Positions 13,501-19,479 of a stretch of 64,000 bases of DNA are shown in pieces. Location of the stretch: positions 189,689,198-189,753,197 of the forward strand of contig NC_133622.1 of NCBI RefSeq assembly GCF_048593235.1, in the 5' to 3' direction. This stretch comes from Sminthopsis crassicaudata. Lineage: Eukaryota. Position 1 is the stretch's first letter. Every line of letters begins with the position of its first letter. Made by a program: the position numbers and the translations under genes. The notes beneath the pieces are model-generated. The model had not been told where the DNA came from and did not search any database. It worked only from the letters and a program-made list of their open reading frames with translations.

Positions 13501-14150
13501 GAGTTTTTATTTTTGTTTTTTAGGAAAGAAAAAGGAACTATATGTACAAAAATATTTATAACAGATCTTTTTGTGGTGGTAAATAATTTGAAATAGAGGG
13601 GATGTCCGTTAATTGGGGAATGGCTGAACAAGTTGTAGTATATGATTGTAATGGAATTTTGGTATGCTCTAAGAAATGACCAACAGGATGATTTCAGAAA
13701 AGCCTGAAAAGACTTACATGAACTGATGCAAACTGAAATGAACAGAGCTAGGAAAATATTGTACACAGTTACAGTAATATTGTACAATGATCAACTGTGA
13801 ATAATTTAGTTAATCTAAGTAATAGAATGACCTAAAACAACTCCTAAGAACTCATGATGAAAAATGCTGTCCACTTCCAGAGAAAGAACTAATAGAGTCT
13901 GAATGCCAATTGAAGCACACTTTTTTTTTTTAAACTTTCTTTACTTTTCTTGGGGTTTTTTTTGTCTGTTTCCCCCCACCCCCCACAACATGACTAATAT
14001 GTTTTTCATGTCTGCACTTGTATAACCTCTAAACATTCCTTTTCTTTTTAATCAGGGAGGTGGAGATTCTGGCAGGGAGGGAATTTGGAGCTCAAAGTTT
14101 AAAAAAAAAATGAATGTTTAAATTTTTATTTGTACTTGGAAAAGATTAAA
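10590..14150 (+). mobile_element. Old degraded L1 ORF2 plus 3'UTR, interrupted by younger insertions
   Basis: L1 ORF2 relic motifs (ccaggaccagataaattcacaag, ctctttgcagata, gaatataaaataa, aagccattccccaaatgataaatggtcaaagg); many stops. Confidence 0.9.
11720..12120 (-). mobile_element. Young 5'-truncated L1 nested in the old L1
   Basis: Same 3'UTR family as 10141-10520 and 56275-56648; flanks cacataaacttt / catataaacttt look like a TSD. Confidence 0.8.
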
Positions 14151-14231
14151 CTATTTGGATACATGTTTAAAATTTTTTTTTAACATTCTCCCCCCACCCC
14201 GTGCGCTGGTGCCCCCTCCCCCCCAAAAAAA

Positions 14232-14370
14232 GGGTTAAGTGACTTGTCCAATCACTGGCCGGAAGAGGAGTTTCTTTGCGTCAGGAAACAGGGAGAGAAG
14301 TGAAAGGAAAGCCTATTAAACCAGCTGCCAGAGAGGTGTGAACAAGAGGATGGCAGGGTCACACAGCTAG
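14232..14370 (+). mobile_element. MIR/CORE-SINE fragment split by a ~108-bp insertion copied from the CDK11-like CDS
   Basis: gggttaagtgacttgtcca [insert] gggtcacacagctag; the uninterrupted motif gggttaagtgacttgcccagggtcacacagct occurs many times elsewhere in the window; insert 14257-14358 matches 15186-15286 at about 91%. Confidence 0.8.
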
Positions 14371-14637
14371 GTAATATTCCTTTAAAAAAATTGAGTCCCA
14401 AATTCTTTCCCTTCTAGGGAAAATGCTTAGAAAACAATGAAAAGCTTAAGTCTGATCTCCTCACTCACTCTTTCCCCCTGCCCCCCGTGCTCCCTTTCCG
14501 TGCCCCTCCTCCCTTCTCCTTCCCGTCTTAGTCAGAGCACTTAGCTCACTTTACTCATTTCTCTTGGTTGCTTAGTTGGAGTAGCAGCAAAAGGCCGTGG
14601 CTCCGGCCAGTTTTTGGTTTAGCTCCAAAAATAAAAA

Positions 14638-16662
14638 ATGAGTAATCAAAAGAATTCTTGGAGAGTGAAAACTTTAGATGAAGTTCTTCAGGAGAAGAAG
14701 GGAAGGAAGGAACAAGAAAAAATGGACGAGGCTAAGGGCATGAAAAATTCCCACGATCTGGATTCCCTCCACGAGGAAGAACTGAGAGATCCCTGGGAGA
14801 CAAGATCCAGGAATTCCCTTCGCAGGAGGGAAGATGCCTCTTTGGCTGTCACACCTGCTCGGTCCACGTTACCAGAAACAAACTCTCTTCCCTGGACAAA
14901 GAAACGCCGATGCCGCGGTCATTCAGAAGAAGGTCGCAAGCGTGCCAGGATGGAAACGCGGGAGCGAGAAGCCGAGCGTCGGGCCCAGCTGGATGAAGTG
15001 CTTCCAGAATGGGAGAGGCGGAAAAGGAGGGAGAGGGCCCGAGAGCGTTATGGGAGGGAGAGCCATCCTGTGGAGGCGCCGCCCCAGAAGGGAGAGCGAG
15101 AGTGGACCATGAGGGAGCAGCAGCAGCAGCAAAGGGAACCGGAGCGGGAGAACCGGGAGGAGCAGGACAGGCGCAAAGAACCGGAGGCCGGAAGAGGAGT
15201 TTCTTTGCGTCAGGAAACGGGGACAGAAGTGAAAGGAAGCCTATTCAACCAGCCGCCGAAGAGGTGTGAACAAGGGGATGACAGGGAGCCGAGCAAAGAG
15301 GAGAAACTGGAAGAGAGGGATCTTCTTTCTGGTTTACACGATATAAATGACAGGGAGAGGACGCCCAGTTCAGCTGAGTCCTCCTCAGTAGAATCGGGAT
15401 GTGGCTCTGAGGAGGAAGAAGGGAACAGCTCAGAAGAGGAGGAGGACACAGGAAGCAATTCTGAGGAACTATCTGAGCAGTTTTCTGATAGTGTGAGTGA
15501 AGAGGAAGAGAAAGGAGGCCAAAGGTTAGTTGTTAGGGAGTCAATATTTGATCGACATTTCAGAGAGATGGAAGAAGTACTTCCGAGAGAACTTCACAAA
15601 AATGACTCCGACAGGAGGCCACAACTCAGTGGTCGAATACAAGGAGATGATGGCCCAGACAATCCAACAAATCCTACAGAGATGAAACGGGAGCCCCCCA
15701 CATGTTTTCCTGCCTTCCAGGGTTGTCGGAAACTGGATGAATTCCTGTGTCTGAACAGGATAAACGAGGGCAGATATGGTGTGGTATACAGAGCAAAGGA
15801 TAAAAAGACCCATGAAATTGTGGCTCTGAAAAAATTGAAAATGGAAAAGAAAAAAGACGGCTTCCCAATTAACTTCCTCAGGGAAATCAATATCATGCAG
15901 AAAGTTCAGCACCCCAATATTGTCGCTGTCCGGCAGATCGCGGTGGGCAGCCATTTGGACGAGATTTATATTGTAATGAATTACGTGGAGCAAGACCTCA
16001 GGAAGTTCATGAATACCATGAAGCGGCCCTTCCTGCCAGAGGAAGTGAAAACGCTGATGATTCAGCTCGTTCGGGGAGTGAAGTATCTCCATGACAACTG
16101 GATCCTTCATCGGGACCTCAAGCCTTGCAACTTGCTCCTCAGTAACTCGGGCATTTTAAAAATCGGTGATTTGGGGCTGGCCAGAAAATATGGCAACCCG
16201 AGAAAAGCCTACACTTCCGTGGTGGTGTCCCTGTGGTACCGGGCTCCCGAGTTGTTACTCGGAGCCCAGGAATATTCCACCGAGATAGACATGTGGTCAG
16301 TGGGCTGTATATTTGGAGAGCTCTTATCCAAGGCGCCTCTATTTCGAGGGAAATCAGAGATTGACCAGATCAACAAAATCTTTAAGAAGCTGGGAACTCC
16401 AACTGAGAAGATTTGGCCCGGTTACAATGACCTACCGGTAGTGAAGAACGTAACGTTTGAATATCAACCCTCTAATCAATTAGCGACAAGATTCGGGGCC
16501 CTTCTCTCTGACCGGGGCTTCGAACTGTTGAACGAGTTATTGATCTACGACCCCAGGAAGAGGATCAACGCACAAGACAGCCTGGCGCATGAATACTTCA
16601 GAGAAAGCCCACTTCCAATTGACCCCTTCATGTTTCCCATGTGGAGGCCCAAGATCGAGTAG
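14638..16662 (+). CDS. CDK11B: Intronless CDK11 (PITSLRE/CDC2L, p110-type) retrogene, 674 aa, probably an intact Ser/Thr kinase
   Basis: N-terminus [21 protein letters not shown] resembles CDK11 MGDEKDSWKVKTLDEILQEKK. RE-rich and poly-E regions are present. The kinase domain runs QGCR...[54 protein letters not shown]. One continuous ORF covers what is a ~20-exon parent gene, so this is a processed copy and not the parental locus. Confidence 0.93.
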
Positions 16663-16790
16663 AACAGTCTCACACGAGGCCTAGGGCTCCAGAAGGACTT
16701 GATCGTAGCCAGATTATAACGGGAGACCCAGGCCGCCATCTCACCGTCATCAACCAGGGAAATGTTCAGCTGGGCAGTTCACACAAACTT
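16663..16790 (+). pseudogene. Decayed remnant of the CDK11 C-terminal tail after the new stop
   Basis: In-frame *NSLTRG resembles QQRVKRG; then in a shifted frame PRAPEG-LDRSQ...HLTVINQG resembles PRPPEGGLGYSQ...HLTTTNQG. Confidence 0.75.
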
Positions 16791-17620
16791 CACACCAGGC
16801 CACAGAGCACAGGCAACCGGGAGGGAATTACAACCGGACCTAGCGAGGGGCACGGGGGACAGGCTGGGGTGGAGGGGCTGGAGGACAGGCCTCGGGGGTC
16901 CTTCTGCTCCCCCACGGGGCACGTGCAGCTGAGAAAGACAGAGGGGACGGAGGGGGACGCCCTGCAAACGTGAGAACGTGTGTGTGTTGTTATTTATTAC
17001 ATGATTTTACCAACTAGAGTTTTTCTGTTGACCCCTTTCTTCTGGACCCCAACGTGCTGGAGGTGGGGGGTGGGGGGAGATCCTTTGGGGGAGCCGGAGC
17101 CCGCCGTCCCTGCGGTCACCCCCGAGCGCCGGCCGCTCCCTCCCGCGCGGAGAGGCTGCTTACAAAGGCCCGAGTGTTGCGAATCAAGTCCGTTTTGTCT
17201 TCGCAGTAAAACTGGAGTCGAGGAAGGTTTTTTTCCCCTTTCCTGGAGACACCGTGCCCCGTTTCCAGCCCCGCGGGGACGGCGCGCGATCCCCGGGCCG
17301 CTGGTTGGGAAGCCCGAACAAAAGCGACTTTATTGTCCCTGGAGTAGAGGGTGGAAAGCGCCGGAGCTTTGGGGGGGGGGGAGGGGGCAGCTAGCCCGGT
17401 GCAAGATGAGCATGGGTGTCGGGACAAAAAACGGAGAATGCGGACTTTTCGGAGCGACGATCTGAGCAGTTTTTTGATGGAATGAGTGATGAGGAAGGAG
17501 ACCAGAGCTCTTCCCACCGTTAGACTCTCCCTCCCCGTCCGGCCCTTCCCTCTGCCCCATCCCCCCCCCCCCTCCTGGGCCCCTTGTCCCACCCTCGATC
17601 ACACCTCTTCTCCCTCCTCC
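16700..17620. promoter_or_regulatory. GC/CpG-rich island downstream of the retrogene
   Basis: Dense CpGs (cgcgcgg, ggcgcgcgatccccggg) against a CpG-depleted background; judged by eye. Confidence 0.6.
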
Positions 17621-19479
17621 CTACCCCTCCTCCCCAGCTCTCCCCTGGGCCCCATCTTGCCAGGCAGGAAACTTCAGATAGATTCACACTGATCGACTCT
17701 AGGAGGGAACGAGCTCTTCTCACGTTCCATTTACTGTTTTAAAGAGGGCAGTGCTACATTCTTTCGGTCTGTTCATTCATTGATTCACTTCATTATTCCT
17801 TTAGAGCTGGAGGGAGAAGCAGTCTGTGGTACGGAATAACATATAGGACAAGAAGCTGGGTTAGAATACCCTGTCCCACTGGTGCTTCCCACGGGGTCTT
17901 CCTGGATAAGTCATCTAACATCTCTGAGCCTCAGTTTGCTCATCTTTAAAAAGAGGGAAATGAACTTGATGGCTTTCAATTGATTATTTTCCAATCAGTT
18001 AACGTTTATGGCTCCCACCAGCGCTAGATCCTAGGAGAATTTTCTTTCCCCATTAGGTTTGGCTGGTGGGGACTATTTTTCTGTTCATATGTCCCACTGA
18101 CTAGAGTGTGGCAGATACTTATGAAATGATGGTGTTTATTTGTTTACCCTTTTTTTAATTTGTGAGAACTCCCAAGGAGAAATCTCCATTCACCAGTAGA
18201 ATGTGGCAGGTACTTAGTAAATGATTGTGAGTTGTTGTGGTTTTTAACCTATTTTTTATTTGTAGTGTTACCATATGGAACTCCCAAGGAGAAAACTTCC
18301 CCATTCAACAGAGTAGATCATCATCTTCTCCACAACAGAAGTTTTTTGTTTTTGTTTTTTTTTTCTTTTTCCAGTCGCCTGGGACACTGAGGCAAAGTTA
18401 CCTGTCCAGAGTCACACAACCTGTATGTGTCATAGATCCTTTGGCTCTCCACACAATGACACTGCCTGTCTTGATTGATTTTTCAGATTCATTTGATGCA
18501 AATGACTTGTATTTAGTTGTTTTCTTGTCCTTATCAGACTAACCTTCTTGAGAGCAGAGACTGTATTTTTACCTCCTCTCTTCTTCAGTTCTTTCCCCAT
18601 CCCACGAGGACTTTGGGCTAGATAGCTCTAAAGTTACTTCCAGCTCTAAACTGCAACTTGGTTCATGAAATGCATGTCTAATAATCAGAGCTGTAACTAT
18701 GATGGAGTGACTGGGGTTTTGATTCAGGGCTACTTCGGTAATTTGCCAGAAATAATTAGTTAAAATAGGGAACTACCAAAGTGAGCTCTCCATCTTCTCC
18801 CAAAGATTTATGTCGCTCTTTCCACATATCTGACAACTGAATTTGTCTTAAAAAATTGATTTGGGGACATATTTCATGCTGCTGTTGCATCTAGCATTTT
18901 AGGTTAGTGAGAGTTCGGATGGTAGAAACAGTCATGTGTCAGAGGAATTTTTAGAGAGGAGGGGAGCGAGTCTGTTCAAATATCCAAATCACATTTCTGA
19001 TAAATCAAGGCCTGACTGAAACACTAGGATTTGAGGCCTTGGTAAAGGGTCTAGCAAGATGCTTCCTATCAGAGGGCTGGGCTAAGGCTCATTCTACCAA
19101 GTTTGGGTTTTATCAGCTACTCATACTTTGTTTTCAATTGCCACTTCAGCTAATCAAGACAGGCCCATGAACTAACCTCAGTCCTTACTGCTAAATTATT
19201 TGAGCTCACTACATAATAAATGCTATTGTCTGGTGTAGTCCATTCAAATCATTTTGGTTAGGTCAAGTAAATCAACCATTCCCTAGTCTTCCTGGATTCC
19301 AGCCTGCATTGGCTATGCTGATGGGGAGAGGAGAGGAGACCTGGGCCTTCAAGCAGTTCAGAATCCGAAGATCTTGGCCACCGGGAGCTCACAAACTGGG
19401 GGAGACAGAGGAAGAACAACCCCATATGGAGGAATAAGTACTATGTGTCTGGCACTGTACTAAGCATTATTATTTTTTT

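Follow-up and report, generated by a model that had tools for sequence, protein, structure and literature searches.

CDK11 is a splicing kinase, and several residues that govern its activity have been described in the human protein. Phosphorylated T595 is held by the arginines R484, R561 and R585, and SAP30BP contacts W557, Y587 and S589, the phosphorylation of which (S589) may suppress activity (PMC13324802). Residues 751-762 form a C-terminal pseudo-substrate, with phospho-S752 lying in a pocket of K524, K564 and S566, and an engineered human CDK11 deltaC is more active on SF3B1 than the wild type (PMC13324802). T595 is reported to be indispensable for complex formation, with CDK7 as the kinase that probably sets it (PMC12721332). 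The main text of PMC13324802 gives no residue-level contacts between the PITSLRE helix and cyclin L. Extra CDK11-derived genes exist by annotation in rodents and bats, where the 'CDK11B-like' proteins of Peromyscus, Rattus and Myotis (P0007, P0248 and P0023; also P0017 and P0026) keep PITSLRE, DFG, KTSN, EEGTYG, YTPVVVT and the full C-terminal tail. No publication that links CDK11 with a retrogene or a marsupial was found in the literature.

The copy described here differs from these rodent and bat genes in each of these features. It lies in a window of 64,000 nucleotides from Sminthopsis crassicaudata, the term window denoting the whole stretch of DNA that was analysed, and occupies the only long ORF of its region, one frame of 2025 bp:

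14638-16662, plus strand: CDK11B-derived retrogene, an intronless ORF of 674 codons with a TAG stop (from the ORF list and collinearity with CDK11B)
15757-16599, plus strand: protein kinase domain, residues 374-654 (Pfam Pkinase, E=3e-67)

The top hits of the encoded protein in protein searches are all CDK11, and its best structural relatives are the solved human CDK11B chains (E=3e-172), which score 578 bits where CDK2 reaches 274. With the wallaby CDK11B protein (P0014), the ORF aligns over its full length, from the parental start codon on. The wallaby parental gene spans about 38 kb and contains multiple exons, and since the retrogene is collinear with it and yet free of introns, the ORF at 14638-16662 is a processed retrogene of CDK11B.

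Around the retrogene, neither a poly(A) remnant or A-run nor a target-site duplication or flanking direct repeat was found, as would be expected of an old insertion, so that their absence is weak evidence. The neighbouring DNA carries what we take to be marsupial L1-like repeats, including an upstream stretch (13600-13900) that resembles the 3' end of such an element. Shortly before the ORF, some 100 bases (14257-14358) are a copy of the ORF's own positions 15186-15286, in two blocks with 96% and 85% identity. The collinear devil alignment has only about 39 bases opposite window positions 14189-14353, and the patch at 14257-14358 seems to be absent there, being a feature of the window lineage alone unless the devil has deleted it. 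Eight other long ORFs of the window gave no domain match in a Pfam search. The CDK11 gene or orthologue itself was also considered as the identity of the ORF and was ruled out, as a frame without introns that is collinear with a parent of several exons is a retrocopy.

The best protein match is a Tasmanian devil 'LOW QUALITY PROTEIN: CDK11B-like' (P0001). The corresponding devil locus (L001) is collinear with window positions 3433-26550 (22 kb) at 82-94% identity; the two copies are therefore orthologous, and the insertion predates the split between the window and devil lineages. This devil copy, the only orthologue available, is a pseudogene disrupted by two stops and two frameshifts, all of which are bypassed by the NCBI model P0001 and the UniRef-listed devil models P0252 and P0342. 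In window coordinates, the lesions are:

about 14913-14957: TGA at the junction of a 45-bp deletion
15701: +1 shift in a C run
15967-15969 (L001 11211-11213): TAT to TAG inside the kinase domain
16592: -1 shift near the end

Both species stop at the same TAG after K-I-E, so the C-terminal truncation is old. In the kinase region, 53 derived residues are common to both copies. Protein searches returned no other dasyurid protein of this kind beyond the devil, the only matches to the 205-residue motif-bearing piece were further devil gene models, and no marsupial CDK11B besides that of the wallaby appeared in protein searches and cluster listings.

Individual residues were checked on the sequence, on an alignment to solved human CDK11B and on an alignment to wallaby CDK11B (P0014). 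Conservation was assessed in a panel of 95 diverse CDK10/11-like kinases, and changes were polarised at the amino-acid level using the wallaby parent protein. Every motif that the first-pass annotation had listed was recovered where it had been placed, within an intact ORF, and the catalytic core that it had described as intact is indeed retained: the VALK lysine K398 (15829-15831), the alphaC glutamate E416, HRD with D493, N498, D511, APE (16243-16251) and DMWSVG, together with the gatekeeper Met and the hinge. The positions that differ from the parent are as follows:

15763-15780, plus strand: G-loop NEGRYG (parent EEGTYG; human 445-450); E376N common to the devil, T379R window-only
15865-15885, plus strand: alphaC helix PINFLRE (parent PITSLRE); T412N and S413F common to the devil, R415 and E416 kept
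16108-16131, plus strand: catalytic loop HRDLKPCN (parent HRDLKTSN); T496P common to the devil, S497C window-only
16168-16176, plus strand: DLG for DFG (F512L), common to the devil
16195-16197, plus strand: N520, the equivalent of human S589; Asp in the devil
16210-16230, plus strand: T-loop YTSVVVS (parent YTPVVVT); P527S window-only, T531S common to the devil, T526 kept

Several of these changes fall on positions that hardly vary among the relatives. The Phe of DFG (F512) is present in 94 of 95 and the Thr of VVT (T531) in all 95, so that F512L and T531S lie on 99-100% conserved positions; the Ser of KTSN (S497) is found in 92 and the Thr of PITSLRE (T412) in 88. The cyclin-binding PITSLRE helix that characterises the CDK11 subfamily reads PINFLRE in the retrogene and PMNFVRE in the devil. 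Asn occurs at the PITSLRE Thr position in one relative out of 95, and the S413 column contains only Ser, Ala, Thr or Gly, never Phe. From helix periodicity, S413F probably lies near the cyclin-facing side of the helix, the one lead towards the altered cyclin choice that the first-pass annotation proposed. As a set, the five motifs nevertheless show no excess of change over the remainder of the kinase region (9/42 against 73/275 sites, p=0.57), and 6.7 changes are expected when site conservation is allowed for, compared with the nine observed. T496P is not an exotic change, as it brings HRDLKTSN closer to the ordinary HRDLKPxN kinase consensus; Pro occupies this position in 7 of the 95.

Six of the nine motif changes (E376N, T412N, S413F, T496P, F512L and T531S) are common to the devil, which retains T379, S497 and P527 at the three positions changed in the window only (T379R, S497C and P527S) and carries changes of its own in or beside the same motifs (I411M, L414V, P521L and V528L). 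Free variation of the motifs among orthologues had been named in the first-pass annotation as an argument against its reading of an active kinase with altered control. Such variation is found in part, because three of the nine changes are species-specific and four further ones are added by the devil, the remaining six being present in both copies. The motifs are thus of mixed age, some of their changes being old and others the product of continuing drift.

DLG in place of DFG is compatible with catalysis in other families, having been described in the active kinases Nek7 and RIPK1 and in type I TGF-beta receptors, and it also occurs in the active WNKs and GRKs. The remark in the first-pass annotation that DLG occurs in active kinases agrees with the descriptions of Nek7, RIPK1 and the type I TGF-beta receptors, and its reading of the retrogene product as an active kinase is plausible.

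For comparison with human CDK11, 69 is added to the window residue number, an offset that was checked by K467, the 445-450 loop, M516, D580 and T595. The retrogene shares with its CDK11B parent the catalytic residues, the gatekeeper Met, the T-loop Thr T526 (human T595) and its arginine ligands R415, R492 and R516 (human R484, R561 and R585), as well as W488 and Y518, the equivalents of W557 and Y587; K495, the equivalent of K564, is likewise kept. It departs from CDK11B in its lack of introns, in the motif readings PINFLRE, DLG, KPCN, NEGRYG and VVS, in the Asn that stands for S589 and in the loss of the last ~52 residues, the end of the frame being marked by two features:

16660-16662, plus strand: premature TAG, at the same position in the devil; the protein terminates at a position corresponding to human residue 743
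16663-16800, plus strand: decayed, frame-shifted remnant of the parental C-terminal tail (sequence reading; ORF 16641-16973)

As the stop corresponds to human position 743, the protein lacks both the pseudo-substrate (751-762) and S752. The tail remnant is recognisable in another frame, in which H-L-T-V-I-N-Q-G corresponds to H-L-T-T-T-N-Q-G of the parent; identity to the devil is 80.8% across 16663-17000, compared with 92.5% in the kinase part. The decayed tail forms an internal contrast to the open frame upstream. Two residues of the phospho-S752 pocket are also changed, namely K524 to Arg (K455R, common to the devil) and S566 to Cys (window-only), and T565 has become Pro (human numbering). 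The altered phosphoregulation proposed in the first-pass annotation is therefore supported at the level of the sequence and extends to more sites than it had named, as the pseudo-substrate and S752 are cut off and K524, the S566 pocket position and S589 are changed as well. The pattern is one of retained catalytic and activating features and lost CDK11-specific brakes. The residues kept are also the universally conserved ones, and the simplest reading would be that a working kinase core is still selected and that regulation was relaxed once the tail was lost. The engineered human CDK11 deltaC resembles the retrogene in being without the pseudo-substrate 751-762; the truncation of the retrogene differs in being natural, old and accompanied by many other substitutions.

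Selection was assessed by comparing the codons of the window and devil copies, using NG86 with bootstrap, maximum likelihood (ML) under codon models and simulations for stops; the flank totals used alongside exclude an HSP that included 17915-17957. By NG86, omega is 0.60 (bootstrap 0.44-0.84), with 0.51 for the kinase part and 0.66 for the N-terminal part. ML estimates are 0.74 overall (p=0.09 against 1), 0.66 for the kinase part (p=0.13) and 0.80 for the N-terminal part (p=0.36), and omega exceeds 1 in no part tested. Rewiring of the regulatory motifs, as put forward in the first-pass annotation, is not borne out by these values, omega since the split being indistinguishable from 1. The dN of 0.088 equals the corrected flank divergence of 0.087, and mismatches between window and devil amount to 9.5% in the ORF and 8.2% in the flanks, so that the ORF shows no extra conservation. 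Derived residues number 46 in the window lineage, no fewer than the 31 of the dead devil copy (p=0.11), and three sites with a conservation of 93% or more (E433Q, V435A and S497C) have changed in this lineage. Taken together, omega, the match of dN to the flanks and the counts of derived residues indicate weak amino-acid constraint since the split. Relative to the wallaby parent, 82 of 318 sites of the kinase region are changed in the retrogene (about 74% identical), and a comparison of the wallaby and walrus parental kinase regions gives only 4 differences in 319 sites.

The reading frame tells of more constraint, with stops and frameshifts falling far short of the neutral expectation. Simulation of the window branch predicts 3.8-4.9 stops, and the probability of finding none is 0.8-1.7%; along both branches, one substitution stop is seen where 7.6 are expected (p=0.004). 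Indels in the ORF number 6, against about 25 expected from the flank ratio (about 11 at a conservative ratio), and four of these six are in frame, compared with 12.5% in the flanks (p=0.003). Substitutions avoided sites with a family conservation of 90% or more, both on the stem (4/85 against 49/232 elsewhere, p=3e-4) and on the two terminal branches together (5/85 against 38/232, p=0.016), as well as in the overall comparison of the window copy with the parent (8/85 against 74/232, p=2e-5). The scarcity of frame-breaking changes and the avoidance of conserved sites show that the gene has, through most of its existence, been coding and subject to selection that was weak yet genuine, and that it died recently in the devil.

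The reading that we favour, with a probability of about 0.55, is that the window copy is a weakly constrained, dispensable and probably still catalytic CDK11 paralogue, of which the motif changes reflect loss of regulation. Having lost several of the brakes of CDK11, changing almost freely and being dead in the devil, the copy looks more like a loosely kept spare gene than a redesigned kinase. According to this scenario, a processed CDK11B retrocopy would have been inserted long ago in a dasyuromorph marsupial and retained as a protein-coding gene, and a nonsense change that preceded the divergence of the Tasmanian devil lineage would have cut off the C-terminal tail, which is auto-inhibitory in human CDK11. 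CDK11-specific regulatory positions, including the phospho-S752 pocket, the S589 site, the PITSLRE helix and the DFG Phe, may then have drifted, and the residues for catalysis and T-loop activation would have stayed under selection. After the split, selection would have acted mainly on the open frame, with amino acids changing at a near-neutral rate, and the gene would later have died in the devil. The present protein of the window species would most likely be a catalytically competent, less restrained CDK11-like kinase with a marginal, dispensable function, its motif changes being more readily explained by relaxed constraint and lost regulation than by purposeful rewiring.

An alternative that we hold to be rather improbable is that constraint has recently been lost in the window species too, so that the gene is on its way out and the open frame reflects inertia. 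It would account for an omega indistinguishable from 1, for a dN at the flank rate and for derived residues no fewer than in the dead devil copy, and the protein collection searched contains no annotated protein matching the ORF at 14638-16662. Neutrality along the whole branch, however, would leave the frame free of stops with a probability of at most 1.7% and free of frameshifts with one of at most 0.7%, so that constraint could have been lost only within about the last fifth of the branch. Adaptive rewiring is unlikely in our estimation: here an active kinase would have been reshaped for a different cyclin or none, escaping phospho-controls for a new function, for instance in the germline. 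The loss or alteration of every known inhibitory feature (the tail, S589, K524 and S566 of the pocket, the T14-like Thr) next to a full set of activating features would fit such a history, as would the bulky S413F where 95 relatives have only small residues (S/A/T/G), probably near the cyclin-facing side, the maintained open frame and an ORF CpG observed/expected ratio of 0.65 against less than 0.35 in the flanks, which hints at germline hypomethylation. Yet the motifs have not changed disproportionately (p=0.57), three of the nine changes are confined to one species, the devil has altered the same motifs differently and carries a dead orthologue, and none of the parts tested has an omega above 1.

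A bolder version, which we consider a long shot, is that some dasyurids keep a germline-expressed, constitutively de-repressed CDK11 paralogue that acts with a partner other than cyclin L-SAP30BP or with none, as a lineage-specific splicing or meiotic kinase; it would be without the pseudo-substrate, the S752 and S589 control and the T14-like site, and would carry a bulky Phe on the cyclin-facing helix. Very improbable, finally, is a pseudokinase or decoy, in which the protein would be made and be catalytically dead owing to DLG, VVS and the G-loop Arg, binding cyclin L-SAP30BP or substrates. The near-invariant DFG Phe and the Thr of the P+1 loop have indeed changed in a frame that stays open. 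However, K398, E416, D493, N498, D511, T526 with its three arginines, the gatekeeper and the hinge have all been preserved, and pseudokinases usually lose some of these. Active kinases with DLG have been described, and the exchange of Thr for Ser retains the hydroxyl.

If the protein of the loosely kept paralogue is made and active, it would represent a natural experiment on CDK11 regulation, in which the pseudo-substrate tail, a feature described only recently, was truncated long ago, the residues that served it have drifted and DFG has become DLG in a CDK, and it could tell which CDK11 controls are dispensable for catalysis. Otherwise, it would join the lineage-specific retrogenes that are retained for some time and disappear from a sister lineage, an ordinary course in mammalian genomes.

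Sequencing runs were screened for sampled words of the region 14400-17000. Four runs of one study contain 85-89% of these words and three smaller runs of another study contain 20-52%, none of the seven being recorded as RNA; twelve runs from the same species contain next to none. Run X5, which is labelled as a second organism, contains 20% of the sampled retrogene words, which suggests that a close relative carries a near-identical copy. The CpG observed/expected ratio, 0.65 across the ORF, rises to 0.87 at 17000-17299 and is 0-0.35 in the upstream flank. There are 34 CpGs found in the window copy only and 18 in the devil copy only (p=0.036), the devil copy having lost more; the pattern is compatible with, and gives a hint of, germline hypomethylation of a live locus in the window species. 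The stretch 17000-17600, which begins 350 bases past the retrogene stop, is rich in GC (0.61-0.63) and CpG (observed/expected up to 0.87) and resembles a CpG island. In the devil models P0252 and P0342, the kinase region is spliced to a plus-strand segment that corresponds to window positions 17216-17340.
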